NCBI GenBank assembly: GCA_965240325.2
Contig: OZ251251.1
Coordinates: 496,001-560,000, forward strand
Length of the DNA: 64,000 bases
Origin: Rebecca billardiae RCC1528
Lineage: Eukaryota > Protista > Haptophyta
Direction of reading: 5' to 3'
The notes beneath the pieces were generated by a model that worked only from the letters and a program-made list of their open reading frames with translations, made no database searches and was not told the DNA's origin. The position numbers and the translations under genes were made by a program. Below are positions 7,110-29,732 of the stretch, one piece after another; positions within the stretch are counted from its first letter, which is position 1; every line of letters starts with the position of its first letter.

Positions 7110-9171
7110 ATGCGGTCGGCCGCCCTGCGCCTGGCGGTAGCGGCCGTGCTGCTCGCGCAGCTCGCGCCACCGTGCAGCGCCTACCGCGCCGCGCGCGTGC
7201 GCACCACCGGCCCGCACCGCACCGGACCGCACCCGGCCGCCGCGCCGGCCGACCCGGACTCCGAGCTGGTTGAGCTCGCGCGCGCGAGCGCCGCCGGCGG
7301 CGCGGCGGCGTCGGTGCGTGGGCTGGCGTGGGCGCGCGACGGGCTCGGCACGTGGCGGCGCGCGCTTTCACGCGGGCTCGTGCCCTCCACGCTCCCCGCC
7401 CCGCTTGCTCCCCTACTCGTCACCACCGCCGTCTCCGAAGCCGTGGCGGCGGACGCCGCCGCCGCCGCCGCCGCCGCAACTGACTGCTGGCCTGGCGAGC
7501 CGCTGCGCTCGGCGCTCGAGGGCGCGTGCGAGGAGCTGGCGCTGCCGCCGCTGTGCCGGCGGCACCCCGCACTGATCGGCGTCGTGCTGCGCTCGCTCGT
7601 CCGCCTGGCCGAGGCGTACCAGGCGGCCGTACGCGACAGCGACGCCGACGACGACGACGGCGGCGGCGGCGGCGGCGGCGGCGCGGCGCGGCGCGCGCGC
7701 GCGGCGGAGCGGACACGCGCCGCGGCGGTCGAGGCGTGGCGGGAGCGCGCGCGCGGGCTGACCGAGCTCGACGCCGCGCTCGGCGGCCGCCTGCCCCCCG
7801 CGGCGCTCCCGAGCCTCGCGGACGTCGACGCGGACGGCGGCGGCGCGGAGGCGGCGGGCGGCGGCGGCGGCGGCGAGGGCGGCGGCGGCGCGGCGGCGGC
7901 GGCGGCGGGCGCGGCGGCGGCGTCCGCGGGGACGCTCGAGCCCGGCGCGGGGCAGGGCGCGTGGCACGCGCCCGAGGGCGCGTGGCGCGCGCTCGCCGCC
8001 GCGCGCGCGCGCGTCGAGGCCCTGCCCGAGCTCCGAGCCTTCATGGCTCACGTGGGCCGGCGCGCGGCGCCGGCCGGGCGGCGGCGCGCGCGGCTCGCGC
8101 GCGGGGTGCGCTCGGCGCCGCCCGCCGCGGCCGGGGTGGCGTTGGAGGTGCGCGCGCCGCCGTGCGACGCGGGCGGGCTCTCGCGCGGCGCCGACGCCGC
8201 GCGCGCCCTCGCCTCCGAGCGCGCGCTCCTCGCCGGCGGGCCGCGCGCCCGCCGCCTCTTCTTTGCGCGATGCGCATCGGCCGAAATTGCTTCGCACGCG
8301 ATGGTGGGATGGGGCGCGCCGCCGGCGCGCCCGCCGCGCCGCGCGCGCGCGCCACGGCGCGCGCCGGTGGCGGAGGGCGCGGGCGCGCTCTTCGTGTGCG
8401 TCGACACCTCCGCCTCGATGGCCGGCCCGCGCGAGGCCATCGCCAAGGCCGCCGTCCTCGGCGCCGCGCGCGCGGCCGCGCGCGAGCGGCGCGCGCTGCA
8501 GGTGCTGGCCTTTGGCGGTCCGGGCGAGCTGGCGCTCTTCGGCGAAAGTCCGGGGAGTCCGGGGAGTCCGGGTAACCCGGGGGGTCCGGACGGGCCCGGT
8601 CCGGGGCAGGACCTGCTCGGCGGGCCGGACGGGCTGCGCCGGCTGCTCGCCTTCCTCCACGGCTCCTTTGGCGGCGGCACCGACGTGGCGGGCGCGGTGC
8701 GCCGCGGGCTTGATTCGATCGAGGCGGCGGCGGCGCGGCCCGGCGGCGGCGGTGGCGCCGGCTCGGGCGGCGGCAGCGGCGGCGGCGGCGGTTTGGGTGG
8801 CGGCGGCGGCTCAGGCGGCGGGTATGGCGGGATGGACCTGGTGCTGGTGTCGGACGGCGAGGTGCGCTCGCCGCCGGCGGACCCGCGCACGCTGGCCCGC
8901 CTCCGCGCGCTGCGCGAGCGCGCCGGCGTGCGTGCACACGCACTGCTTGTCTGTAGCCGCGAGGAGGCGGCGGCGCGCGCCGCGCGGCTCGAGCCGCTTG
9001 TGGGGTGCGGCGCGGACGGCGGCGGCGTGCGCACGTTCCTGTGCGACGCGCTTGACGCGGCGTACGCGCCGTCGCGCGCGGGCGCGCGCGGGGACCGCGC
9101 CGCCGCGCCCATCACGCGCGCCACCGCGCGGCGCAGCGCATCCGCGCTGCGCATGGCCGCCGCCGCCGGCG

Positions 9172-9237
<66 letters not shown>

Positions 9238-9845
9238 ACGACGCGGCCGCGCTCGCGCGGCTGCGCGCGCTTGCGCCGGCGCTGCACCGCGCGCGCGCGC
9301 AGCTGAGCGCGGGCCTGCTCGAGCGCGAGTCGCAGTGCGGCATCCTCCTCCTCGCCGCGCTGTGCGCCGAGCACGTGTTGTTGCTAGGGCCGCCCGGCAC
9401 GGCAAAGTCTGAACTCGCGCGCCGGCTGGGCGCGGCGGTGGGCGGGAAGCAATTTGAGACGCTGCTCTCGAGGTTCTCGCCGCCGGACGAGCTGTTCGGC
9501 CCGCTCTCGCTCGCGGCGCTCGAGGCGGACCGGTACGAGCGCGCGACGCGCGGCTTCCTGCCCACCGCGACCGTCGCGTTTCTGGACGAAGTATTTAAAG
9601 CGAACGCCGCCGTGTTAAACTCGCTACTAGGCGTCTTGAACGAGCGAACATTCTCAAATGGCGGGCCCACGCCTGAGCGCGTGCCGCTGCGCACGTGCGT
9701 CGGCGCGAGCAACGAGCTGCCCGAGGGCGAGGAGCTCGACGCGCTGTGGGACCGCTTCCTCTTCCGCCTCGCCGTCCCGCCGCTCGGCGACGACGCGCTG
9801 CGGCAGCTGATCGGCGCCGCGCCGCCGCCGGGCGCGGCGCCGGGC

Positions 9846-9879
<34 letters not shown>

Positions 9880-11381
9880 GCGCGGCGGGCGGCGGTGGCG
9901 GCGGCGGCGCGGCGGCAGCCGCCGACGCCGCCGATGCGGCGGCCCTCGACGCGCCGGCCGCGCTCGCGGCGGCGCGGCACGCGCTCGGCCTCGACGAGCC
10001 GCACGCCGCCGACCCGTCACACTCACCACCGCCGTCGCCCGAGCCGGCGCGCGGCGCGGCGGCGGCGGCGGCGCCGCCGCCGCCGGTGGCGCCGCCGCGG
10101 CTTCGCTCGCTGCGCGCCGCCGTGGTGCTTCCTACTCACGTGGGTAATTTACTCGTGGGCGCGCGGCGGTTCGTCGAGGAGGAGCTGGCTGCGGCGGAGG
10201 GCGGCGGCGGCGCGGCCGGGCTGGGCGTGGTGGGCTCGCGCCTCTCCGACCGCCGCCTCGCGCAGGCGGCGCGCGCGCTACGCGTGTGCGCGGCCGCGCA
10301 CGGCCGCGCGCGCGTCGGCGCGCTGGACTGCTTGGCTGTGCTGCCGCCGACGCTGAGTCCGGAGCCGGCGCAGTCCGGCGCGCTGCGCGAGTGGGTGGCG
10401 GCGCGGTGCGTGCCCGAGCCCGCGCTCGGCCCGCTCGCCTTCGTCCTGCGCGAGCTCGCCGACGAGGCGCGCTCCGAGCTCCGAGCCACCGGCGGCGAGC
10501 TTCTTGCAAGCCGCGGCGCGCCGGCGCGCGCCGCGGCCGCGCTGCGCCGACTCGGCGCGAGCGCACGGGAAGTGTGCGCGGCGGTGCGCGCGGAGATGGG
10601 CGAGCTCGAGGCGTGCGTGGACGAGCTCGAGGGCGGGGCGGGCGGGACCAACGCCGCCTCGCCCGCCGACGCCGCGCCGCCCGCCGACGCCGCCGACGCC
10701 GCCGCAGCCGCCGCACCGCCCGCCGCCGCCGCCGCCGCCGCGCCGCCCGCCGCCGCCGCCGCCGCCGCCGCTTCGGCCGCTTCGCTCCCGCACCTGTTCC
10801 TCGAGGCGGCGGAGGCGGCGGCGGCGGTGGCGGAGCTCGGCCCGCGCGCGCGCGCGCGGCTCGCCGCCGCCGCCGCGCTGCTCGAGCAGGCGCGCCGCGC
10901 GGCAGACGCACTCGACGGCGCCGCCGCCGACGCGGCGGCGGCGGCCGCCGCCGACGCGGGCGGCGACGGCGCGCGCCGCGCGGCAGAGGAAGCGGAGCGG
11001 CGTCTGGCGCGGATCGAGGCGCTGGCGGCGGAGCTGGCGGACGGCGGGGGCACGGCGGAGGGGCGCGCGATGCGCGCCGCCGCCGCCGCCGCCGCCACCG
11101 CCGCTGCGCCGCCGCCGCCGCCCGCCGCCGCCGCCGCCGCAAGCGCGGCCGGTGGCACGGCCGCGGCCGCGGCCTCGGCCGCCGCCGACGCTGACGCTGC
11201 CGACGCCGCCGCCTCGGCGGAGCCCGAGGCCGGGCTGGGCGAGTTCTCGGAGGAGGAGCTGCGGATGGGCGTGAAGGAGGCGCGCGCCACGTTCTCGCCC
11301 GCGCTCTTCCGCACGTGGAAGCGCGCCAAGCGCGCGGCGGCCGCCGCCGCGCGTGAGCAGGCGGCCGCCAGGCGCCAGTGA
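7110..11381 (+). CDS. ViaA-like VWA domain fused to RavA-like MoxR AAA+ ATPase, with N-terminal signal/transit-like leader
   Basis: 1423-aa uninterrupted ORF. VWA MIDAS VCVDTSASM (8403), FGGGTD, DLVLVSDGE. AAA+ Walker A GPPGTAKS (9387), SRFSPPDELFGPLS, Walker B FLDEVFKA, LNSLLGVLNER, GASNELP, ALWDRF, SDRR, all matching RavA-subfamily signatures. Confidence 0.9.
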
Positions 11382-11889: not shown

Positions 11890-13074
11890 TAACGGGCGTC
11901 TGTACAGAGTAGTGCGTCCGACCGGGCCGCCCTCCAGCACGAGCCGCACGCTAGGTGGCGCGCTCCTTCCGCTTCCCTGCCGATTCAGATTTGACACCTG
12001 GCATCATTGGTCCCGTGAGCTGCGGCTGCTGCAGCCGCAACGTGCTGGCGCGGCGAGACAGCCTGGAGTGAGTGCGGACCAAGACCGTGACACTAAGCAC
12101 CGTGGCTTACTCGTGCAGCATCCGCACCGTGCGCGCACAAAGAGTTCATAGCGTAACGCAGGGCGACGCGCGCGCGCGGCGAGCGAGCCGGACAACCACC
12201 GCCCGCCTCCACATGCAGCCCCCGCGCGCGCGGCGCGCACCATGACCATCCGCCCCAGAGTGCCGCATAGCGCGCAGCGTGCGCGGTCGCACCTGGGTCG
12301 TTGGACGTATGCCGTGGCGCGGGCACGGCGCGGCGATGCCGCGCTTGCTTCTCCCGGGGGCCTGAGGCCCCCACGCGCGGCGGACTTCGTGCGCGCGCCC
12401 CGCCTGATGAGCGCGCGGCGCGCGGCCATCGAGCCTCCATGTGCTGGGCCGTTGCGCGTGCCGCCTGGTGCGTATTCGGTCTCGTCAGATGCGTGCTCGG
12501 TCTCGTCAATCGTTACCCGCGTCGCTTGCGGCAGGCAGCCCCCCTTCTAGCGGTTCTCGAGGCCAAACCATCGACGCTTGGACGCCTACGGCCGCGCGAA
12601 GCGACGGCGCCGAGCGGGCGCGCGCGCCCGGTACGAGAGGTAGACTCCCACATCGTGCCTCCACACCCCGCCCGCGCCAGCGCACCCGCCCCTGGAGCTC
12701 TTCCCGCTCGTCGACGGCGCTCGGCACCCGAGCCGAGCCGAACGTGTGCACGGCGCACGACGCAGCGCGGCGCAACGGGCGCGGCGCGGCGCGCTCGGGC
12801 GAAAGTCCCCCGGGGCTCCGAGCGTACGGGCCGACGCGCCCACTCGCGGCGCGCTCCGCGCGCGCCCCGCCAAATGCGAGGTGACACACGAGGCGCGGGT
12901 CGAGACGCTCGGGGTGCTCGGCGCGGCCGTCAAACAGGGCCCCCCGCGAGTTGAAGAGCGTCCCCGGATTCCATTTTCCGGACTCTCCTTGATGCTGCGC
13001 AAAGCCGCGGGGGCGGCCGTCCCGTCGAAACGGACGTGCCCCCCCCGCGGAAAAACGCGCAAGGACAAGTGACG

Positions 13075-13456
13075 ATGGCGGATGAGGCGGACATTGACGG
13101 CGTAGGCGCCCCGCCCGCGCCGCCGTCGCCGCGCCGGCCGGCGCCGGCGTGCGACGAGTGCCGCGCGCGCCCGGCGACGCTGGAGGACGCCTCGCGCGCC
13201 GACGGCCTCCTCTACTGCGCGCCGTGCTGGGACGACGTGCGCGCGCGGCTCGCGGGCGCGGCGACGCTGCGCGCGCACGCGGTCGGGCCGCTCTCAGCGC
13301 GCCGCCGCACGCGCGCGCGCGAGTGCCGCAACCACCCGGCGCACACGCTCGAGCTGGTGGTGGGCGATGCGGTGCGCCACGCGCACCCCGCCGCCGACGC
13401 GCCCGGCGCGCCCACCGCCGCGCTCGCGGAGCACGCGCTGCTGTGGCCGACACCAG

Positions 13457-13497
<41 letters not shown>

Positions 13498-14293
13498 TCG
13501 GAGTCGGGCGAGGACGGGCGGCCGGTGGCGCAGCCGGCGCTCGACATGGCGCGCAGCCTGAGCCTCGCGTGCGAGCGCTGCGTCTCCGACGGCCTCGCCG
13601 ACGGCCGCGCGCCCCCTGTGCCACTTCTGCGCGCCGCCGCCGCCGCCGAGCTCCGAGTGCTGCGGTGGTCGGAGGCCGCGCGCGGCCGCGCGGCCGAGCT
13701 CGCGCGCGCGGCGGGCGCGGCGCGCGCGCGGCGCGCGGAGGCGGCGGCGGCGGCGGAGGCGGCGCGCGCGGAGCTGCGCGCGCGCTTCGCCGCGCTCCGC
13801 GCCGCGCTCGACGCGCGCGAAGCCGAGCTGGCCGCGGCGATCGATTCGCTCGACGAAGGCCGCGGCCGCGCGCTCGGCGCGCAGGCGGCGGACTTGGATG
13901 CGGCCGCGGCGGCGGTACGCGCGGAGGCGGAGCGCGCGGAGCGCGTGGCGCGCGCGTACGACGCGTACGAGCAGCTCGAGCACCACGCGGCGCTCTGCGC
14001 CCGCCTCGCCGCCGCGCGCCGCGCGCGCGCCGGACGCACCGCGCCGCGCGCGCGCGCCACCGTGCGCGTTGCGCTGAGCGCGCGCGCCGCCGGCGCGCTC
14101 GCGCGCTCCGGCGCTGTGCTCGGCGCGCCCGCGGCGCCGACGGTGGTTGGCGTGGCGCCGGCGGTGCTGCCGGCGCACGGCGAGGTGCTGCTCCGCGTCG
14201 AGCTCGCCCACGCCGCCGGGCTCGACGCCGCGCGCCTCGACGTGCGCGTCGGCGGGCTGCGGTGCAGAGAGGTGCGCTGGGCCACGGCCGAGC

Positions 14294-14325
<32 letters not shown>

Positions 14326-16071
14326 GAGGAGGAGGAGGGCGCGCGGCGCGTGCTGACGTGCATCGCGCCCGCCGGCGCGGGCGTGCAGCGCGTGCGCGTG
14401 CGCCTGCTGCCCGACGACTCCGGCGCAGACGGCGGCGCCGCCGACGCTGACGGCCGGCGGCGCGGCGCCGCGGCGGACGCCGCCGAGGCGGCGGGCGCGG
14501 CGGCGGACGCAGCGGACGGCGCGCCGGCCGAGCACGGAGGCGCGGAGGCGGCGGTGACGGTGCGGTATGCGCCGCCGCCGCTCGTCTGGTCCGCCGTGCC
14601 GCCGCCCGCCGCCGCAGGCGGCGCCGACGCCGGCTCCACCTCCATCGTCGTCGCGTCCGCCGCCGCGCCGTTCCCGCCGCCGCCGCCGCCGCCGCCGGCC
14701 GCCGCCGAGGATGGTGGCGCCTGGTGGCTGGGGGGCGGCGCGCTCGGCGGCGGCGGCGGTCGCATCGTGCTTTCGCGCGGGCGCACGCGCGCGCGCGTCG
14801 ACGCGGAGCGCGACGGGTGGCAGAGCGCCGTGTGCGAGGGCGCGTTCGCCGCGCGCGGCGACCACTTCTGGGAGTGCCTCGTCGAGCGCAGCTCGCATGG
14901 CGCCATTGTGGTTGGCGTTGCGTCGGCCGCGGCGTGCGGCGGCGGCGGCGCGGATGCGGGCGGCGGCGGCGAGGGCGGCGGCCGCGGCGGCGCGCGCGGC
15001 GGAGGGGGCGGCGGTGGGACGGTGGTGCACGCAGGCGGCGGCGGGCTGTGGACGCGGCCGGACGCGTGGGGTCTGCACTGCGGCACGGGCAACGCCGTCA
15101 CGAACGGCCACTGCGCACTGCCACCGGGCGCGCCGCCGGCCGAGGCGGGCTTGGCATATGCGCCGCCACTGCTGCGCCCGGCGGCAGCGGCGGCGGCGGA
15201 GGTGGGCGGCGGCCCGCAGCAGCCGAGCCGGCGCGGCGCGGCGCGGCCGGCGCTCGCGCGCGCGCTGTGGGCGACGACCGCGCCCACGCCGGGCGGCGCG
15301 CACACCGCCGCGCGCGCGCCGCCCACACCGTCCGCCGCCGCCGCCGCCGGAGGCGCCGTGCGAGTCGGCTGCGCGCTTCGAATCGGCGGCGGCGGTTTCG
15401 CCAGCCTCGGCTTCTGGGCGGACGGCCAGCCGCTGGGGCTGGCGTTCGGCCGGATCCCGGTGGGGACCGGGCTGGTGCCCTTCGTCGATCTGGCGCACGC
15501 GGGCGACTCGGCCGTTCTGCTCAGCGAGGCCGACGGCCTTGCGCTTCTCGCCGGCGGCGCGGCGAGCGCAGCGGGCGAGCGCGCACGCTCGCAGCTCCGG
15601 CCGGCGGCGGAGCGCGCGCCCGCCTCCAACGCTGCTCTTGCGCTCTCGAGGCTGCGGCTGCCGCCGCCGCTCGGAGGCGCGCGCGCCGCGCCTCCGAGTG
15701 GCGGCGCGACGACGCCGCACGCCACGCCCGCGAGCAGCCCCTTCGCGCACAGCTCAGCGTCGCTGCTTTCGGCGGCGGCGGCGTCGCCGCTTTCGGCGGC
15801 GGCGGCGGCGACGGCTGAGGCGCGCGCCCCACCGTGGGCCGCGGCCGCAGGCGAGTGTGTGAGTGCGAGCGCCGCCGCGGCGCGCAGCGGCAGCAGCCCG
15901 CACCGCGGCGCCGCTGGCCAGGGCGCGAGCACCCTCGACTGGGCGGCAAGTGCGCGCTCGACGGGCGGCGTAGCGCCGCCGCGCGGCGCGCTGCTGCCCA
16001 GCAGGGCGGACTACGATGCGGACGAGGAGGGGCTCGCGCGCGCGTGGGCGCGCGCGCTGCCGGCGGCATGA
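13075..16071 (+). CDS. RING-less TRIM-like protein: B-box-like Zn fingers, coiled coil, IPT/TIG-like domain, SPRY/B30.2
   Basis: CDEC...YCAPCWDDV..H; CRNHPAH...CERC; heptad region ELRARFAALRAALDAREAEL; PTVVGVAP...VRVGG..C...LTCIAPAG; GDHFWECLV, IVVGVAS, VRVGCAL, LGFWADGQPLGLAF, LVPFVDL. Confidence 0.8.
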
Positions 16072-19291: not shown

Positions 19292-22200
19292 CTACTCCTC
19301 GTCGCCACTGCTCTCCGCAGCGGCCGCGGCGGCCATGGCCGAGCCGCACGCCGTCTGCGCGGCGCAGAGCGGGCGCGCGCGCCGGAAGGCGAACACCTCG
19401 TCGACCGTGCGCAGCTCGACGAGGGGCGGCGGCACGCTCACGCTGGGCGGCGGCGCGGCGGCGGCGGGCGCGGCCGCGGCGGCCGCGGGTGCCGCCTCGG
19501 CGGGCTCGGCGCCGCCGGCCGCCGCGCGCGAGCCCGCGTGCACGCACACGATCATCTTGCGCCGCCGCGCGCCGCCGGGCGCAATGTACCGCTCCCAGAA
19601 CGCGGCGATCTCCGGCTGCGAGATCGTCGCGAGCGCCTCCGCCTCCTTGCGCGCGCGCGCAAAGTCGAGCGTGCCCGAGAAGATCTCGGCCCAATCTCGC
19701 GTCGTCTCGTCGGCCATGGCCTTGTCGCGCTGCAGCCTCGACTCGATCAGCGAGGTCGCGAAGCGGCGGAACTCTTCCGCGGGCAGCGCGCGCAGCACGG
19801 CGCCGAACCCCGCGAGGAACGTCTGCGCGGAGGCGCCGCGCGCGCAGGGGCGGGCGGGCGGGCGGGCAAGGGTGGGCGGGCGCGCGCGCGCGCGAGGGCG
19901 AGGGCGCGGCGGACGGAGGCGAGGGCGCGCGCTCGGCGGCGATGCCGCAGCGGCACCGCGGTGAGCTGGGGCCAGGCTGGCGCGGCGGCGGCGCACAGCC
20001 AGCGGCGGCTGCGGCGGCGGCTGCGGCGGCTGCAGCGCGCGCACCTCCGTCCGCGCCTCGAGCTCCTGCGGCGGCTGCACCTTGCTCTGCACGACGAGGC
20101 GGAGGCAGCGCACGCCCGCGACCGAGCGCTCAAGCGTTGCCACGATATAGCCAAGCTGCTCGGTTGTGCGGAGCTGCGCGTACGCGCGCGGTTCGCAAAT
20201 GGCGGCGGCGAGCGCGAGGAGCGCGTCGCGTCTCGGCGTGGAGCGGCCGATCTGGAGGGTGAGGTCGATGGCGGCGTTGCCCTCCAGCTCGTTCGCCGCG
20301 GCCGAGACGTGGCGCACGCCCGCGCGGCCGGCGGAGGGCGCCGCGCGCGGGAGCCACACGCAGCGTGACATGGGCGCGCGCGCGTCGTCGAGCGGCGCGC
20401 CGCCCGCGTCGCCGGGCGCGAGCAGCGCGCCGCCGACGACGCGCGCGAGGGCCGCCGCCTCGTCCGCGGTCGCGTTGCCGTGGACGAGCATGTCGATCGC
20501 GACGCCGTCGGCGAAGAGCCGCGCGCCGACGAACTCGCGCAGCGCGTGCGCCGTGCACGCGCCCGTGTCTGCTAGGAACGCTGCGTACTGCCTCAGGTGC
20601 CATTTGCCAGAGTCGAGCGCGTGAGCAGCGTGGTAGTCAGCGGCGCCGTACGGCGCGCCCTTCCAAAAGTTGGCGTAGTCGAGCGCCTGCTGCTCGCGGT
20701 AGATCTCGAAGCGCTCCGGCTGGATCGCCTCGCCGCGCATCGCCGCCATCTTGCCGACGATCCGCTGCAGCAGCAGCGGCAGCTTGTGACTAAACCCGGC
20801 CAGCTTGAGCGTCAGCCCGCGCGCGGTGTTGTAGAGAGTGTAGTGCAGATCGGCGACCTCGGCGTGGTACGCGAAGCACTGGAGCGCGTCGGAGAGGAGG
20901 CGCGTGTACAGGTTGCACAGGACGGTCGCGCTCGGCGACGCGTACGCCGCCGCCATGCGCAGCTGCACGTACACGGCTGTTGGGCACGCGGCGGACGCGG
21001 CCGCGCGGGCGGCGCGGGCGGCGCGGGCGCGGCGGCGGCGGCGGCGCGCGCGGCGCGGCGCGCGCGCGTGAGCACGGGCTGGCCGAGCGGCGCGGCGCGC
21101 GCGCGGCGAGGCGCGGCGCGGCGCGGGTCGCGCGCGCGCGCGCACCGAGCCGCGGCTTGAGGAAGGTCCGGTCGAGCTTGTGCCACAGCTGAATGCCGGC
21201 GGGCAGCGGCGGCGTCGGGCTCAGCTCGGTCGGCGGTCCGGGCAGCGAGCGGCCGCCGAGCACGGCGGCGAGCGCCTCGGCGGCGGCGGGCGCGAGCTCG
21301 GGCGGCGGCGGCGGCGCGGGCGGCGGCGGCTCGTCCGCCGCCGCGGGCGCGAGCGCGCGCACGCTGAAGTCCGTCGGCACGAACGGGTTCGGCTCGGGCA
21401 TCGCGAGCGGCGGCGATCGGCCGGCGCCGTCCGCCGCGCGCGCGTCCACGTCAGCCCAGCGCGAGATTGCATCTGGCTCGAGCGGGCTCAGGCGGAAGGG
21501 CGTGCCGTACCAGCGCTCGCGGCGCCACGCGCCGTCCGCGGGCGGCGGCGCGCTGCCCGACGTCGCGGACCCGCCCCCCGCCGCGCCGCCCGCGCCAGCC
21601 GCGCCATCCGCGCCATCCGCGCCCGCCGCGCCGCCGGCCGCGCCGGCACCCGCGCCGGCCGCGCCGCCGGCGCCGGTCGCGGCGCCGCCCTCCGCCGCCT
21701 TCACCTCGCCGTCGCCCACGCCCTCGCCCACCGCGGCGGCGGCCTCGTCGGCGTAGCGGCGCGAGACGTGCGTGGCCATCGCCTCGTGCGGCGCGAGCGC
21801 GTCGAGGAACGGGCCGAGCACGCCCGTGCCCGCCGCGCGCGCCGTGTGCAGCGCCGGCCCAGTCAGCACCTCGGCAGGCGGGTAGTGGCACAGGGCAAGA
21901 GACAGCGACTGCGCGCGCGCGAGCGGCTCGCCACGCTCCTCGAAGGCGAAGGCGAGCTGCGCGAGGCCGACGAGCTCGTCCTCCGCGCGCTCGTGCGCGC
22001 CGCCCCGCACGGCGCGCACCACCGCCACGTACTCGAACAGCGCGTCCAGGACGTCGCCGATCCGACCGTCTCCCTCCTCCGTAAGTTCGACCGAGACAGC
22101 AAACATCGCCCAGCCGTCGAGGCCGAGCCGCTCGCCGGCGGAGAGCGACTCGGCCCAGCCGCGCGCCTTGAGCAGGTGCAGGAGCGAGCCCTCGGACTCG

Positions 22201-23195
22201 TGGCCGAGCACGTGCCCCAGGTACGCCAGCGGCTTCGCGCGCCAGTGCGGCCGCGCCGGCGGCATGAGCCACGCAACTGAGAGTAGACGTAGCGACATCA
22301 CCGGCACGACTCGACACAGCGTGCCGCGCGCGCCGCCGTGCGCGCGTGGCGCGTACGGCGGCGTGGCGCTGGCGGCGACGAGGCCGCGCGGCACGCCGAG
22401 GTCGCGGTCGGGCACGCCCGCGAACAGCTCCGCCACCCAGCCCTGCAGCTCGTCCAGCGACTCCCGCCCGTACACAGCCAGGCTCATGCGGTTAGCCGAG
22501 TAGTGCGCCGCGTAGAATTGGACGAGCGCCGCGCGCACGTCGACGCCGGCGGCGGCGGGGCGGTCGCGCAGCGTGGCGAGCGAGCCGGTGGCGAACTGCG
22601 CCGCCGGGTGCCCCGGCGTCGACAGCGCGCGCTGCAGCTGGAACAGCCGCCACGTGTCCGACTGCAGATTGTTGGAGTGTTCAGAGTCGACGGCGTGCAG
22701 CTCGCGCGACGTCGCGGCCTCGGTGAAGAGCGGCGCGACGAAGAACTGGGCGAAGCGGTCGAGCGCGCCGCGCAGCGAGGTGTGCACCACGTCGAAGAAG
22801 TACACCGTGTCCTCCAGCGCGGTGTACGCGTTGTGCGCGCCGCCGTTCGCCGCGAGGAAGTCGTGGTACGCCGACTCGTCCGGAAACTTCTCGGTGCCGA
22901 GGAAGAGCATGTGCTCGAGGAAGTGGGCGAGTCCGGGGAGGGAGTCCGGGTCGGCGAGCGAGCCCGCGCGCACGGTCATGCACGCCGCGCCCTTGTCCGC
23001 CTCCGCGTCGTGCACGAGCACGCACGGCAGCCGGTTGGGCAGCGTGACGTGGCGGTACTGCCGCTCGTCCGACGCCGGCTTGCCGATCGGCTCGGCGAGG
23101 ACGCGGAGCGGCGGGGCGGGCGCGGAGGCGGGCGTGGTGGGGCCGGGCGGAGGGGCGGCGCCCACGCCGCCGCCGGGCTCCATCGCGCCAGGCAT
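19292..23195 (-). CDS. IDE: Insulin-degrading enzyme-like M16A metallopeptidase (3 exons)
   Basis: KPASDERQYRHVTLPN, GLAHFLEHMLFLGTEKFP (HxxEH), NAYT, VDSEHSNN, GHESEGSL, QLRTTEQLGYIV. Exons 23195-21146, 20976-20045, 19822-19292 with GT-AG introns. Confidence 0.93.
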
Positions 23196-23526
23196 CGCGA
23201 GCTCGGGGAAGGGGGAGAGGGAGGCGGCGGCGGCGGCGGCGACGAAGGCCGCGGACGCAGCAAGGCGCGCGCTTTGCTGGGCGAATGAATGGCGCGAGCC
23301 GCGCCCCGGAACCACTGCTTTGGCCGGGGGCTCTCCCGGACTTCCAGACCTTCGTCAGAACTGCTCACCAGCTCTCGCTTTGCTGCTATGACTGCGCTCC
23401 GTCTAGTCGTGGTCTCGTGGTCGTCGTATGCGCCGTATACTACTTTTATACTATACTTTCTCCAGCAGCTGCAGCATACTGTATATGCCGCGTGCATGCG
23501 CCACTGATGAATCATGACGCTGCTGG

Positions 23527-24764
23527 TCAGATGTCGAGGACGGGGCGGCGCACGACCGGCTCGTCGGGCTCGTCGGCGGCGGGTGCCCTGCTGCGGCGCC
23601 CCGCGGGCAGCGGCGCCGTGCCGAGCGTCTCGACCGAGTCGACGATCACCACGTCCGCGTCGCCCGCGCTCTCGTTGTCCGACGAGCCGTTCGCGCCGTT
23701 CGCGCTCTTCGCCGACGTCTGCCGCCGCACGCCGGGCTCGTCAGTGCCGTCCACTAGCCGCGCGGCCGCCTGCCGGCTCGCGGCCGCGGAGACGCGCGTT
23801 TGCGCCGCCGCCGCCGGCGGCGCGGGCGCGGCGGCGCCGGCGCCGAAGCTGTCAGCCGTCGAGGCGGCGGCGACACCGGCGGCGGCGGCGGCCTCGGCCG
23901 CGGGCGGCACGGCGGCGGGGCCACCGATCGCGCGCGCGATCGCGAGCAGCTCGAGGTGCGACGCGCGCGCCTCGACAGCGATCCGCTCCGCATCCTGCGC
24001 CGTCGCGGCCGCGCGCGCCTCGGCGCGCCTCAGCGCGTCTTCGACCGAGTCCGCCACACCGCCGGCGGCGGCGGCGGCGGCGGTGGCGGTGCCGTCGGCG
24101 GCGGCACGCGGCGGCGGCGCGGCGAGCGGCGAGGGCTGTGCGCCGCCGCCCGGCGCCCTGCGGAAGCGGCTGCCGCTGAACGAGCTCGCGCAGCTGCCGA
24201 CGCCGCTGCCGGCGCCGGGCGCGGCGCCAGCGGACGCCTGCCGCCCGACCGCGCACGCGCCGCCGCCGCCGCCGCCCGCCGCCGCCGCCGCCTCCGCCTC
24301 GAGCAGCTGCTGCCGCACAAAGGCGCACGATGAAAGATCGCAGATGGCTGCGGCGGCGGTTGGGTCGATGAGTTGCGGCGTGGCCGCGCCCGAGGCCGAG
24401 CCCTCCATGAGCAGGCTGCGCGCGCGCGAGGGGGCGAGGGAGCGATGGCAGCGGCGCGGCGCGGGCGGGCGGGCGGGAGGCGCGCGGCGGCGGCGGCAGT
24501 GCGGCGCGGCGGCGCGCACGGCGCGGCGCACGGCGGCGGCACAGACGCGGGGCGTGAGTGCGCGCAAGCGCGGGCGGCGCGCGGCGCGCGGCGAGGCGCG
24601 CGCGTGAGCGGCGCGCACCGCTGCTCCACCGACGGCGGCGCGCGCGCGCCGCCCGCGCCCGCGGCGTCGCCCGACGCGGCCGAGAGCACCGTCGCGGCCG
24701 AGCCCGATTTTTGGAATTCCGAATTCTTCGAGTTTCGGAACCGGAGCGCGCCGCCGCCGGTGGC

Positions 24765-24798
<34 letters not shown>

Positions 24799-25325
24799 GG
24801 CGGCAGGCTGGCGATCGCGTCGAGCTCGGCGCCGCCGATCGGCGAGAAGACCGGCGACGCGCCGGGCGTCGCGCCCTCCACCACCACCTCCGTCTCCGCG
24901 CCGCTCGTCGAGCCGGCGCCGGTCCGCTTCGATATCCGCTTCCACTGCCGCCCCGCCACCGCCACCGACGCGGCCGCTGTAACCGCCGCCGCGTCGGACG
25001 TAACGGCCGAGAGGGGTCGAAGCGGCGGCGTGGCCGCCCCCGGCGTGGCCGGCGCGGCCACGCCGCCGGCCGCCGCGCCCGCGCCGCCGTCCGCGCCCTC
25101 CCCCGCCAGCTCGGCCGCCGCCGTCTTCACCTGCTTCCACAGCTGCGCCGTGTCCGCTTCCAGTGCAGCGGTGTCCTTGCCCTGATGCTGCGTCTTGTCC
25201 CGCGCGGTTGCGTGCGCCTGCAGCTCGCGCAGCGCGCGCTTCTTCACGCTGCGGGGGGCGCGCAGGGAGGGCGGGGGCGCGTGTGCGCGTGTGTGTGTGC
25301 GCGTGCGCGTGTGTGTGTGTGTGTG

Positions 25326-25357
<32 letters not shown>

Positions 25358-28300
25358 CGTGCGTGCGCGTGCGTGTGTGTGTGTGTGTGTGCGTGTATGT
25401 GCGTGTGCGTGTGTGTGTGTGTGCGTGTGTGCGTGTGTGTGTGCGTGTGTGCGCGTGTGTGTGTGCGTGCGTGCGCGTGCGTGTGTGTGTGTGTGTGCGT
25501 GTGTGTGCGTGTGTGTGTGCGTGCGTGCGTGTGGCGTGTGCGTGTCGCCAGCGCGCCGCCGGCTGTCGCCGCGCCGACGCGGCGCGCCGCCCGCCCGCGC
25601 GCCCGCGCGCCCGCGCGCCGCGCCGGCGCGCGCACCGGTTGACAAAGTCGGGAAACTTCCGCGCCACTTCCTGGAAGTCCTTGGTGGTGCAGAGGAAGAG
25701 CACGCCGTCCGCCAGCGCCTGCACGGAGTAGAGGTGGTGGCACTGCGTCAGCATGGCGATCTCGCCGAACGAGGCGCCTGCACACGCCCGGCGGCGCGGC
25801 GGCGCGGCGGCGCGGCGGCGCGGCGGCGCGCGGCGCGGCGGGGGCGGCGGCGCGGCGGCGCGGCGGCGCGGCGGCGCGGCGTGGCGCGGGGATGTGCGCG
25901 CGCGTGGAGCGGGGCGGCGTGGCGGGGCGGGCGAGCACGCGGTGAGCGCCCGCACGGCACGCGGCGCGCCGCCGCGCCGCGGCCACCCGGCGCGCGTGCG
26001 GCGCGACTGTCTATTAGTCGTCGCACAGCTTTACCCACCTGGGTAGAGCGTGCTAATCACCAGCGGCGCGTTCGGGTCGACCTCCGCCTCCGGCCCGGCG
26101 GCGGCGGCGAGCCCGCCGCCGACGCCGCCGACGCCGCCGCCGCCGGCCCCCGCGCTGCCGCCCTGCTCCTCCTTGCCGCCGCCCATCGCGCCCGCGCCGC
26201 CGCCGCTCGCGCGGAGGCCAAATCCAAACCCGCCGAGGCTGCCGCGCTGCCGCTGGCTCCGAAGCTTGGAGCGCCACGAGAGCGACTTGGACGCGCCCAC
26301 CTGCACGCCGTCGAGCACGGGCAGCGCCGCGCCCGAGCGGAAGTACGAGCGGCGGCGCGCCTGCTTCCGCCGCTCCGCGACCAGAGCGAAGATGCCTGTG
26401 CGCGGCGCGGCGCGGCGCGGCGCGGCGCGGCGCGGCGCGCGCGGCGTGCGCGGCGTGCGCGGCGGAGGCAAAGGCGGAGGCAACGGCGCGTCTCAGCACC
26501 GCGCGGCTCCGCACCGCGCTGCTGTGCGCTATGCGGCGCATCGCCCGCCGCCTCGCGTCCCCGCGCTCCCGCCCGCGGCGTGCGCGCGCCGCGCGGTGCG
26601 TGCGCAGGCGCGCGGGCGCACGCCGCGCACTCACTGGCGCGCGCGCACAGCACACGGCGCACAGCACACGGCCCGCGGCCCACACACACACACCGCACGC
26701 ACCTCTCTGCACGAAGTACATCGCGGTGGGCATGGCGCCCTTCCGGAAGATGAAGTCCCCTTTGAGGCACACCTGAGGCCGCAGCCGCCTCACGACCACG
26801 TTCAGAAAGTCGACGGACGAGTTGGCGAAGACGGGCACGTGCTCGAGGAAGGGGAGGTACACCTGCGGGCAGCGCGTGTGTGCGCGCGTGTGTGTGTGTG
26901 TGTGTGTGTGCGTGTGTGCGCACGCACGCACGCCAGCCGTGGCGGTCCGCGCGCGGTGTTGACCCCCCCCCACACGCCACACACACGCACGCAACACGCG
27001 CGCACGCACGCGCACGCACGCACGCACGTACACACACGCACACACACACACACACGCACACACACACACACACACGCACTCGCACACCTGCATGTACACG
27101 TCCTGCTGCACCGCCTCGGGCATCTTGCCCACGATCTCGTGCGGGTCGATCCCGCGGTTCAGGTTGTACAGCGACGCGGTGTACGAGGCGATCTTCTTCG
27201 AGAGCTCAGAGTCGAGGCCGTATGCGTGCGCGAACTTGTCGACCTGCGGCACAGGGCGGGCGGGGGGCGGCGTGTGTGTGTGCGTGTGCGTGTGCGTGTG
27301 TGTGCGTGTGCGTGTGTGTGTGCGTGTGCGTGTGCGTGTGTGTGCGTGTGCGTGTGTGTGTGTGTGTGCGTGTGCGTGTGTGTGCGTGTGTGTGTGCGCG
27401 CGTGTGCGTGTGTGTTGTGTGCGTGCGTGTGCGGGGGGCAGCGGGCGGGAGCCGTGTGCACAGAGAGAGAGTGGGGGGGGCGGGATGGCGCCGGGGCGGG
27501 GCGTCCGCTCGCACTGGCGCTGCCCGCGCGCCCCTTGCGACACACGCACGCACACACACACGCGCACACACACGCGCACACACACGCACACGCACACGCA
27601 CGCGCGCACACTCACCCTCTGCAGCCGCTGCGTGTGCTCCGCCTCGATCCGGTCGCGCGTGTTGATCGACGCGGTGATTGTGCCGAACACGGCCGCGTAC
27701 ATGACCGCCCCCGTCATCTGCACGCAGATGGTGTACATCTTCTCGGCGTTCGAGATGGCGAAGATGCCCGCGTACCTGCGCGCGCGGCGGCGGCGTCAGG
27801 GCGCGGGCGTGCCGGGCGTGAGCGCGCGCGCGCCCGAGGGCCGCCGTGCCGCGCGCTGCGCCGCGCGCTGCGCCGCGCGCTGTGCCGTGCGCTGCGCCGC
27901 GCGCTGCGCCGCGCGCACCCCATCGGCGTCATCGTGGCGAACGCCCAGTACAGAGACTCGACGTACTCGGTGGTCTGCCAACACAACACACACACGCACG
28001 CACACGCGCGCACACACGCATGCACGCGCACACATGCACACGCGCACACGCGCACGCGCGCGCGCGTGTGGGCGCGCGCCACAGAGGCGGAGGCGTCAGC
28101 TGTGGGGCACCGGAGCAGAACACGCGCTCGAGCGCGCGCCTGCACGCATGCGCGGGCCAGCCGGCGAGCCGCGGCAGGACGCACACGCGCGCGCGCATGC
28201 ACGCGCACGCGGCACGCGCACGCGGCACACGCGCATGCACACACACACGCGCGGGCACATGCCAGCGCGCGGCGCCGCGCCGCCGCGCGCCGCCGCGCGC

Positions 28301-29732
28301 CGCCGCGCCGCCGCCGCGCGCCGCCGCGCGCCGCCGCGCGCCGCACCGTCTCCCGCGGCACGCTGAAGGCATCCAGCCAGTTGGACGAGCCCCAGCCCGA
28401 GCGCGTCGCGGCGAGCAGGTGCCAGATGCACGCGACGAAGTGCGCCCACCACGCCCAGCACACGAGCAGCGCCAGGATCCGGGTGGGCAGCGGTCCGGTC
28501 GAGACGAGGTCGCCAAGCCGCTCGAATCGGACCAGCCTGAAAATCCGTAGCAGGGTAAATTCGGGGTAGGCGCCGGCGAGCAGCAGGATGAGCGGCGTCG
28601 GGATGCCGAGGAGGTCGACGAGCAGCGTGCGGCTCGCGTAGTGCCGCGCGATCTCCGAGCTGCGCGCGTGCGGCGCGACGGCGGGCGCGCGGCACGCACC
28701 CACGGCGGCGGCGCGCGGCGCGGCGGCGCGCGGCGCGGCGCGGCGGCGCGCGGCGGCGCGCGGGCGGGCAGGCGGCGTGCGGCGGAGGCGGGAAGGGCGC
28801 AGGTCGGCCGACCGGCCGCACCGCCGGGCGGGCGGGCGGGCGAGTGCCACGGCCCCCAGGGCCCGCGCGCAGGCGCGCTCGCGCGCCGGGCACCCATCCG
28901 CGCCGCGCTCCCGCCGCGCAGACCGCGCGCGGGCGGCGGGTGCGCGCGCGCGCGCGCTCGCGCGCCCGCGGCGCGTCGCGCCGCGCGCCGCCGCGCGTCG
29001 GCGCGCGCCGCCGCGCGCACCGCCGCGTCTCGACGGCGCCGTACGACATGTAGCCGACGTTGAAGGTGAAGAGGAGGTCGAGCATGAAGACGGCGTCGCC
29101 CGTCTGCGGCCGCGGTCGCGAGGGCGGGCGGGCAGTCAGCACGGTCCGGGGGAGTCCGGGGGAGTCCGGGGGAGTCCGGGAGAGTCCGGGGCTTGCTGGC
29201 GCGCGCCGCGCAACCGGCTGGGTGTCTGGCACGAGGAGCGCGGCGGGCGCGCGCGCCCCGCGCGGCACGCTCTGGCGCACACGCACGCACACACACACTT
29301 GCACACACGCGCGTGCACACGCACACGCACGCGCGTGCACGCTTACACGCGCGTACGCACTCGCGCTTACACACACACACATGCACGCACACACACGCAC
29401 ACACACACACGCACACACACGCACACACACACACACGCACACACGCGCACACACACACACACGCACACACGCGCGCACCCACTGCGTGACGTTGAGCGGC
29501 ACGCGGAAGGTCGACCTGTCGAGCCACGGCCCGTGATCGTCCTGCTCGTACGGGTACGACGCGTCGAACGGCGAGTACAGGCCCGCAAAGAGCGCGACTG
29601 TGGGGCGCGTGCGCGCGCGCGGGGCGTGCGGGGCGTGTGTGTGTGTGCGTGTGTGCGCGCGTGCGTGTGTGTGTGTGTGTGTGCGTGTGTGTGTGCGTGT
29701 GCGTGTGTGTGTGCGTGTGTGCGCGCGTGCGT

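Follow-up and report, generated by a model that had tools for sequence, protein, structure and literature searches.

A predicted plastid-targeted precursor combining ViaA-like and RavA-like proteins in the haptophyte Rebecca billardiae and other algae

Background

The closest described relative of the protein analyzed here is the RavA-ViaA pair, a MoxR-type AAA+ ATPase and its partner with a von Willebrand factor A (VWA) domain, the cellular job of which is still debated even in Escherichia coli. E. coli ViaA consists of two domains, with the N-terminal domain binding RavA and a C-terminal Arg-rich amphipathic helix (R476/R479) binding anionic lipids, and RavA itself binds lipid via LARA (PMC9489729). 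According to PMC13036017, a single VWA finger occupies the central pore of the hexamer in the characterized MoxR/VWA pairs; in NorQD, the finger enters the pore of the MoxR ring and ATP-driven movement remodels the partner, with insertion of a metal into the client. MoxR ATPases are introduced as bacterial and archaeal proteins in PMC3893208, and our search of the literature retrieved no description of a eukaryotic or plastid ViaA-RavA system; matches to “RavA” in diatom papers turned out to be names of authors. Here we analyze a gene located at positions 7110-11381 of a 64,000-nucleotide (nt) stretch of DNA from the haptophyte Rebecca billardiae RCC1528 (hereinafter, the window: positions 496,001 to 560,000 of contig OZ251251.1, forward strand, assembly GCA_965240325.2), which is a genuine eukaryotic fusion of a ViaA homologue with a RavA-subfamily MoxR ATPase in a single open reading frame (ORF). 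The product is probably a nucleus-encoded, plastid-targeted precursor with a complete bacterial-type RavA-ViaA remodelling system, in the predicted order signal peptide, transit peptide, ViaA (a helical N-terminal domain followed by a VWA domain with a metal ion-dependent adhesion site, MIDAS), transit-peptide-like linker, and RavA-type MoxR AAA+ module.

With E. coli RavA-ViaA, the algal protein shares an AAA+ module for which RavA is the closest match by both sequence and fold, the AAA_lid_8 lid, and an N-terminal half that is colinear with the two-domain ViaA (PMC9489729). Unlike the E. coli system, it is eukaryotic, possesses a plastid-type presequence, is fused in the order ViaA-RavA whereas ravA and viaA are separate genes, lacks LARA, ends in a different, helical C-terminal region of 320 amino acids (aa), and contains long low-complexity inserts. 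The NorQ-NorD and CbbQ-CbbO systems likewise combine a MoxR hexamer with a MIDAS-containing VWA adaptor to remodel one dedicated target, and the VWA domain of NorD is among the fold matches of the algal protein, the N-terminal domain of which is, however, of the ViaA type. Neither NorQ nor CbbQ appears among the PDB sequence matches at E <= 1e-3, and neither a genomic nor any other link to nitric oxide reductase (NOR) or Rubisco was found. The identity of the protein as a CbbQ-CbbO Rubisco activase was considered and rejected given that CbbQ/CbbO were unmatched in PDB, Pfam and NCBIfam searches. The connections to Rubisco (CbbQO-like) or Fe-S complexes raised in an earlier, sequence-only reading of this locus are unsupported by anything tested and stand as analogies only.

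Two further systems join the same kinds of domains in one chain. The plastid/cyanobacterial Mg-chelatase subunit ChlD/BchD, which is active in plastids and connects an AAA+ domain to a MIDAS VWA domain through a charged linker, is a language-model neighbour of the algal protein in the ESM Atlas, but its order is AAA followed by VWA, its AAA+ domain belongs to a different family, and BchI is a distant fold match; identity with Mg-chelatase was rejected (Pfam Mg_chelatase, E 0.011, under the cut-off). Midasin/Rea1 and VWA8 are eukaryotic chains in which dynein-related AAA_5 modules are joined to a MIDAS, and the Rea1 MIDAS is among the fold matches as well; these proteins differ from the algal one in having six or more tandem AAA modules, a nuclear or mitochondrial location and an unrelated architecture, outside the RavA/ViaA lineage.

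Results and discussion

Homology of the two halves

Profile searches, which the sequence-only reading had proposed for both halves of the protein, yield for the C-terminal half highly significant matches to Pfam bpMoxR (E 3.6e-56, aa 725-903), AAA_5 (1e-23) and AAA_lid_8 (1.4e-5, aa 1045-1088) and to NCBIfam RavA (1.5e-51), the latter limited to the core (positions 4-177 of the 498-position profile). Among PDB sequences, only E. coli RavA is matched at E <= 1e-3 (1.8e-45), and a Foldseek search identifies it with an E-value of 1.6e-15, versus about 1e-7 for MCM, BchI and other MoxR proteins. The Walker A motif GPPGTAKS (aa 760-767, nt 9387-9410), the Walker B residues D826/E827 (nt 9585-9590), the sensor-1 residue N868, R882, and R1048/R1049 are all invariant in the family alignment, so that Walker A, Walker B, sensor 1, Arg finger and sensor 2 are intact and the previously described complete MoxR AAA+ module with RavA-subfamily motifs is fully recovered. 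A profile-profile comparison with bacterial RavA-like proteins using hhalign gives an E-value of 4e-114 over the AAA+ module, with the alignment ending around aa 402 of the C-terminal half, just past the lid. The LARA beta-domain was not found: there is no Pfam match beyond the lid, and the structural model is all-helical from that point on. The C-terminal 320 residues are found only in the algal family and cannot be aligned to the C-terminus of bacterial RavA. This region includes a conserved basic helix (FSEEELRMGVKEA..FRTWKRAKRA, nt 11244-11333) that is a possible candidate for a lipid- or partner-binding element standing in for the absent LARA. The helix, with the consensus F-S/T-x-E-E-L-x-x-G-x-K-E-A-K-A...F-K-x-W-K-K-A, is common to the haptophyte members and the RavA-like protein P0046 discussed below, and is modelled with high confidence.

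For the N-terminal half of the window protein, the match to NCBIfam ViaA is significant (E 1.2e-8) and that to Pfam VWA_2 is marginal (E 0.16). Across the family, all 19 N-terminal halves examined match NCBIfam ViaA (best E-value 2.2e-37), 18 match VWA_2 and 11 match VWA_CoxE. A BLASTP search started with this half of the window protein identifies a bacterial ViaA-like gene that overlaps a ravA-like gene at the end of the latter (E 2e-12). An hhalign comparison of 18 algal N-terminal halves with 22 bacterial ViaA proteins encoded by genes following ravA detects similarity with a probability of 100% and an E-value of 6.3e-87 over 438 columns (query 55-539, template 28-473), and this match covers the helical N-terminal domain as well as the VWA domain. 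In the AlphaFold model (predicted template modelling score, pTM, 0.66), the helical domain and a Rossmann-like VWA domain are confidently predicted, and the best matches of the modelled half among solved structures are VWA/MIDAS domains, including those of Rea1 and NorD. The MIDAS motif D432-x-S434-x-S436 (nt 8403-8417) and the additional residues T524 and D582 occupy invariant columns of the family alignment, in agreement with the intact MIDAS noted previously. The last helix of the VWA domain (aa 643-659) is followed by the Arg-rich linker and is at most a tentative counterpart of the lipid-binding helix of E. coli ViaA. The VWA fold of the window protein is interrupted by a poly-Gly low-complexity insert (nt 8730-8835, aa 541-575) that is absent from the homologues and is modelled with a predicted local distance difference test (pLDDT) value below 50.

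Both halves are family members rather than orthologue-grade ViaA and RavA, because the scores are far under the NCBIfam equivalog cut-offs (34.7-37.4 bits against 500 for ViaA, NF008230, and 176 bits against 681 for RavA, NF010054) and, in the case of RavA, because LARA is missing.

Distribution of the fusion and its unfused relatives

An exhaustive HMMER search of 1.84 billion representative sequences with aa 340-1100 of the window protein produces 6891 matches. Among the best 150 of these, which were inspected, a ViaA-like match lies upstream of the AAA+ match in about 50, and about 35 distinct proteins carry a DxSxSM MIDAS motif 250-480 residues before Walker A. A search for proteins of similar length retrieves fusions of 1087-1422 aa with the identical ViaA-RavA order, and an alignment of eight sequences is colinear from the start of the ViaA N-terminal domain to the conserved basic C-terminal helix. 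The nearest cluster includes a transcript fragment of Pavlovales sp. CCMP2436 from MMETSP (45% identity to the window protein). The other sources, according to taxon labels that are available for a minority of the database members, are the synurophyte Mallomonas annulata, Isochrysis galbana and related prymnesiophytes, and the dinoflagellates Polarella glacialis and Effrenium voratum; diatom members are found through an ESM Atlas cluster named “ATPase RavA family protein” (61 members, all eukaryotic). All labelled sources are photosynthetic. The fusion noticed in the sequence-only reading does exist but is not peculiar to this genome: the survey of homologues shows that it recurs in Pavlovales, prymnesiophytes, a synurophyte, diatoms and dinoflagellates, with about 35 homologues in haptophytes, ochrophytes and dinoflagellates. 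The sequences of the family are already public, under automatic names only (“MoxR-like ATPase”, “VWFA domain-containing protein”, “Clp R domain-containing protein”).

In the dinoflagellate members, a Clp_N (Clp R) domain separates the ViaA half from the RavA half (P0007 on contig L003, P0044, P0045, P0058, P0073 and the corresponding cluster). In Effrenium voratum, four paralogues with consecutive accession numbers are encoded on one contig of 2.5 Mb. Neither a dinoflagellate spliced leader nor a poly(A) sequence was found on contig L003, the origin of which from RNA is thus at most putative.

The bacterial counterparts were examined in those 80 loci of GTDB species representatives that showed the highest similarity; most belong to Pseudomonadota. 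In 68 of the 80, the RavA-like gene is immediately followed by a ViaA-like gene of the same strand, in agreement with the earlier description of RavA and ViaA as separate operon partners; in none is a ViaA-like gene located upstream of ravA, and in none is the RavA-like ORF fused to a VWA domain. Because the algal order (ViaA-RavA) reverses the bacterial one, the algal fusion is not the result of operon read-through. Cyanobacteria are absent among these 80 best RavA-like matches, a sample from which no donor lineage is inferred. One metagenomic bacterial protein (P0006, L001:8001-10862), encoded near flagellar and PutA-type genes, is a fusion in which RavA precedes ViaA, as in the bacterial gene order; this fusion could be a frameshift artefact, and several neighbouring genes on L001 look split.

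In green algae, the RavA-like protein is unfused, about 557 aa in length, and contains a chloroplast-transit-like N-terminal extension (e.g., ...RCRA↓AAEPD; here and below, the arrow marks the predicted cleavage). It is represented on a picoalgal contig, in Edaphochlamys debaryana (KAG2487131.1) and in an Atlas cluster of 239 chlorophyte members. On the compact, apparently intronless picoalgal contig, this standalone gene (L004:10001-11674) is located beside genes for PsbP, SNARE and EH-domain proteins, and no ViaA-like gene was found within 10 kb of it; the 1041-aa protein encoded next to a green-algal RavA-like gene was considered as the ViaA partner and rejected, being unrelated to ViaA. 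The nearest relative of the N-terminal half, by a feature search and by an independent structure search, is a chlorophyte-only cluster of 718-aa proteins with VWA_2/VWA_CoxE domains (TM-score 0.56 over 428 residues, with both domains covered). In a phylogenetic tree of RavA-like proteins (436 columns), 37 bacterial sequences are separated from all algal ones, fused or not, with a Shimodaira-Hasegawa-like approximate likelihood ratio test (SH-aLRT) value of 99; relationships among the algal groups are poorly resolved.

The linker and the fate of the fused chain

The linker of the window protein includes an Arg/Ser/Thr/Ala-rich, acid-poor stretch that reads ...ITRATARRSASALR↓MAAAAG, followed by poly-Gly (G17) and poly-Asp (D6), with the candidate site SASALR↓MAAAA, in which ALR↓M corresponds to aa 679-682 (nt 9144-9155). 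Across the family, linkers are variable and repeat the same layout, an acid-poor Ser/Thr/Arg-rich stretch, Leu-x, Ala/Met/Ser, and an acidic run, e.g., STALY↓AKR...DDDDD, TALF↓ARRRKFDD and SRLY↓MS. Stromal processing sites determined by N-terminomics in Thalassiosira contain Ala/Ser at position -3, Leu at -2 and a small or charged residue at -1, followed by Ala, Ser or a Met that is later removed (Huesgen et al. 2013, PMC3774753); the sequence after the site has a net negative charge, and the transit peptide before it is Ser/Thr-rich, acid-depleted and positively charged (PMC3774753). When these features are coded as a strict rule, 13 of the 35 distinct fusion linkers contain a site, compared to 1.9 in shuffled sequences (maximum 8, 200 shuffles); under a relaxed rule, the counts are 21 of 35 and 5.4 (standard deviation 2.2, maximum 14, 300 shuffles), and sites are 4-9 times denser in the linker than elsewhere in these proteins. 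The layout of the linker is also that of the N-terminus in the green-algal standalone RavA-like protein, namely, transit peptide, cleavage site, acidic stretch, helix and AAA+ domain. Judging from these sequence features, stromal cleavage of the linker of the window protein near ALR↓M (aa 681/682) would have close to an even chance.

The simplest history compatible with these features would be that two plastid-targeted genes in the order viaA-ravA fused, with the second signal peptide lost and its transit peptide kept as the linker. A separate observation concerns a relative whose sequence clusters with the window protein in the tree (contig L087:1-3233, Logan SRR30664515). Here, the ViaA-like ORF stops at 820-822 and, after a gap of about 610 nt with a lower GC content, is followed by a RavA-like ORF (P0046) that starts at 1431 and possesses its own signal-peptide-like N-terminus (...SLVR↓MSPRASS). 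Enumeration of splice sites shows a single canonical GT donor and two potential acceptors by which the halves could be joined, so the arrangement may represent either an unfused tandem stage or an intron.

Known plastid polyproteins, such as those of dinoflagellates and Euglena, are imported by means of one presequence that serves several mature proteins and are mostly tandem copies of one protein. The linker described here, with its resemblance to a transit peptide with a processing site, is reminiscent of these precursors, but the algal fusion would be heteromeric, consisting of adaptor and motor, and is found in haptophytes and ochrophytes, with the cleavage predicted. Internal plastid-targeting signals are another comparable case (e.g., Hirakawa and Ishida 2010, cited in PMC3774753).

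The main alternative is a permanently fused single-chain machine in which every AAA+ protomer would keep its tethered VWA adaptor, with 6:6 stoichiometry per ring. The ORF is indeed continuous, the conservation of the fusion across such great evolutionary distances suggests that the fused state itself is under selection, and ChlD of Mg-chelatase, the ESM Atlas neighbour mentioned above, is a precedent for an AAA+/VWA chain in plastids. Nevertheless, the linker matches the published diatom stromal-site pattern with an enrichment of about 4-fold over shuffles, and the arrangement with one VWA finger per hexamer pore (PMC13036017) fits a 6:6 tether poorly, which makes the permanently tethered machine rather doubtful. 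The 1:1 VWA:AAA stoichiometry that the fusion was previously thought to force is undermined by the transit-peptide-like linker with stromal-processing-site features: if the halves separate after import, the enforced 1:1 ratio within the complex would fall away, and equal synthesis would remain. It appears more likely that the precursor is imported and then divided into adaptor and motor than that the chain stays tethered.

The presequence and plastid targeting

The N-terminus of the window protein (MRSAALR / LAVAAVLLAQLA / PPCSA↓Y) consists of a charged n-region, a hydrophobic core of 12 residues, and small residues at positions -3 and -1, with Tyr25 at +1. The following segment (aa 25-47) is Thr/His/Pro/Ala-rich, with four Arg, three Thr and no Asp or Glu until D48. 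The Arg-rich transit-like segment of the sequence-only reading is thus recovered, and the signal peptide ending before Tyr is predicted by heuristic assessment of the hydrophobic core and the -3/-1 rule. Reportedly, Gruber and colleagues found in 2007 that Tyr is accepted at +1; Trp and Leu also occur there besides Phe. In complex plastids, Phe at position +1 of the transit peptide is crucial for import (PMC4329603), and nine homologues of the ochrophyte type (P0017, P0020, P0021, P0022, P0024, P0027, P0030, P0034 and P0036) show the pattern xxA/S↓F after a hydrophobic N-terminus, with junctions of the ASAFAP type (CDA↓F, VES↓F, VNA↓F, SIS↓F, VDA↓F, INA↓F, VNS↓F, TNS↓F). In the nearest homologue (P0010, L086:826-5457, Joint Genome Institute sample 3300017285), the ORF extends upstream to an ATG at 826, and this extension, omitted by the gene caller, encodes an N-terminus with an ASAFAP-like junction (...DALVDALA↓FSGAP).

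Given the Phe junctions in the ochrophyte homologues, the chloroplast-type N-termini of the unfused green-algal homologues and the photosynthetic sources, plastid (stromal) targeting, as proposed previously, is the best reading for the window protein. A non-plastid protein, with the N-terminus serving as a secretory/endoplasmic reticulum (ER) signal or membrane anchor and a function in the endomembrane system, the periplastidial compartment or mitochondria, could be suggested by the prymnesiophyte homologues, in which the residue at +1 is not aromatic, and the link of bacterial RavA-ViaA to respiratory complexes would suit mitochondria. This possibility is improbable considering that Phe is located exactly after the signal-peptide-like region in nine ochrophyte-type homologues, in a motif that is crucial for plastid import; that the window protein has Tyr at the same position, followed by an acid-free positively charged stretch; that the green-algal N-termini are chloroplast-transit-like rather than signal-peptide-like; and that all taxa identified so far are photosynthetic.

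Integrity of the reading frame

The gene is one uninterrupted ORF of 1423 aa plus the stop codon, in a single frame of the forward strand; its start codon, in the context gccaccATG, is the first ATG in frame that follows a stop. The GC content is about 80% in the ORF and 62-63% in the flanks, where stops are present in all frames. Because ORF length alone proves nothing in such GC-rich DNA, where the other frames of the window contain chance ORFs of 300-550 aa, codon-position composition was examined. The GC content at the third codon position (GC3) is the highest in 20 of 23 consecutive 180-nt bins, including those of the linker (9090-9270), and the bins without a GC3 maximum correspond to Ala/Gly low-complexity runs; the scan of 7110-11381 indicates neither a frameshift, nor an intron, nor a concealed gene boundary. 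The single intronless ORF reported previously is thus continuous, with the GC3 signature maintained across the linker, and overall the description of the sequence in the sequence-only reading proved correct in every element that could be tested. An artefact of gene modelling or assembly, in which adjacent viaA-like and ravA-like genes are read as one because a stop is absent by chance at 80% GC or through a sequencing error, might be entertained in view of the random ORFs in other frames and of the split arrangement on L087 with its well-formed second signal peptide, but is very improbable given the GC3 periodicity through the linker, in contrast to the drop to 62% GC in the intergenic flanks, the existence of about 35 independent fused ORFs from different phyla and sources with different GC content, AT-rich ones included, which makes chance read-through unlikely, and the presence of several fused ORFs on contigs of transcript-like length (4.3-4.5 kb).

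Layout of the gene and the surrounding window

The features assigned to the ORF are listed in Table 1. Other long ORFs in the window, of 790-1011 aa, are located at 13036-16071, 20790-23315, 23527-25986, 26050-28569 and 37489-39864; the GC content around them is 75-83%, and many are overlapped by ORFs on the opposite strand.

Table 1. Features of the ViaA-RavA fusion gene in the window
Feature	Coordinates	Strand	Basis
ViaA-RavA fusion precursor ORF	7110..11381	+	Intronless; GC3 periodicity throughout; colinear with 7 homologues
Signal-peptide-like N-terminus (aa 1-24), predicted cleavage CSA↓Y	7110..7181	+	Heuristic hydrophobicity and -3/-1 rule
Transit-peptide-like segment (aa 25-48)	7182..7253	+	Read from sequence; features required per PMC4329603
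Alpha-helical N-domain, ViaA N-terminal-domain homologue (aa about 50-395), with low-complexity Gly/Ala inserts	7257..8294	+	hhalign against bacterial ViaA; AlphaFold helices, pLDDT 80-95
VWA domain (aa 425-660), intact MIDAS, poly-Gly insert aa 541-575	8382..9089	+	Alignment, AlphaFold, fold search, hhalign
Linker (aa 661-714), transit-peptide-like candidate processing site	9090..9251	+	Sequence layout; motif definition PMC3774753
MoxR/RavA-type AAA+ core (aa 715-905)	9252..9824	+	Pfam, NCBIfam, alignment, PDB sequence, fold, hhalign
Ala/Gly/Pro low-complexity insert between AAA core and lid (aa 906-1040)	9825..10229	+	Unconserved in homologues; pLDDT <50
AAA lid (AAA_lid_8) with SDRR sensor-2 motif (aa 1046-1049)	10230..10409	+	Pfam, alignment, PDB sequence, hhalign
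Family-specific all-helical C-terminal region (aa 1101-1423), without LARA	10410..11378	+	Alignment, model, hhalign

Proposed mechanism and implications

In the mechanism that we propose for the plastid-targeted precursor, the protein would enter the ER via the signal peptide and cross the inner plastid membranes via the Tyr/Phe-initiated transit peptide. In the stroma, the linker, which resembles a transit peptide left over from a time when RavA was encoded by a gene of its own, would be cut by the stromal processing peptidase near ALR↓M, with the release of adaptor and motor in equal synthesized amounts. The RavA-like part would then form a hexameric ring, the ViaA-like part would dock and hold the target through the MIDAS, and ATP hydrolysis would remodel the target, most plausibly to mature or repair a metal-containing complex of the plastid that is probably associated with a membrane. 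By analogy with the characterized pairs, and because the catalytic and MIDAS residues and the ViaA N-terminal domain are kept, LARA is absent and a basic C-terminal helix is gained, the algal proteins are expected to use ATP to remodel or mature a dedicated client in the plastid, possibly at a membrane. In Chlamydomonas, a “moxR ATPase” (Cre13.g603225) has been recovered with chloroplast ribosomes (PMC8894945), and in Phaeodactylum, two “Von Willebrand factor” proteins are induced by ppGpp; these proteins might conceivably be related to the fusion family.

Several points weigh against this interpretation. The signal peptide and cleavage sites were called with our own heuristics rather than with SignalP or ASAFind, and the prymnesiophyte homologues P0002-P0004, although equipped with a hydrophobic N-terminus, have no aromatic residue at +1 and also fail the linker rule. 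That rule was coded after the sequences had been seen, with terms taken from the published consensus, and accordingly provides moderate evidence. Finally, the persistence of the fusion across several phyla could equally mean that the intact chain is functional. On a broader and more tentative view, the protein could be an imported heteromeric polyprotein with an internal, retained transit peptide, derived from a system that was ancestral to the plastids of the green and red lineages and acts on a photosynthetic or other plastid metallo-complex.

What appears to be new is a known machine in a new compartment, with a reversed, fused architecture and a probable internal processing site. Algal plastids would have conserved a RavA-ViaA system, encoded by two genes in the green algae and by a single fusion of reversed order in diatoms, golden algae, haptophytes and dinoflagellates. 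This points to a conserved plastid client that nobody has sought, in groups that include the main marine primary producers. Being widespread, the family is less exceptional than first thought; it is also more tractable because orthologues are present in transformable diatoms, Phaeodactylum and Thalassiosira both being amenable to transformation. The diatom orthologues could show whether internal transit peptides allow a machine of two parts to be imported into complex plastids as a single precursor.

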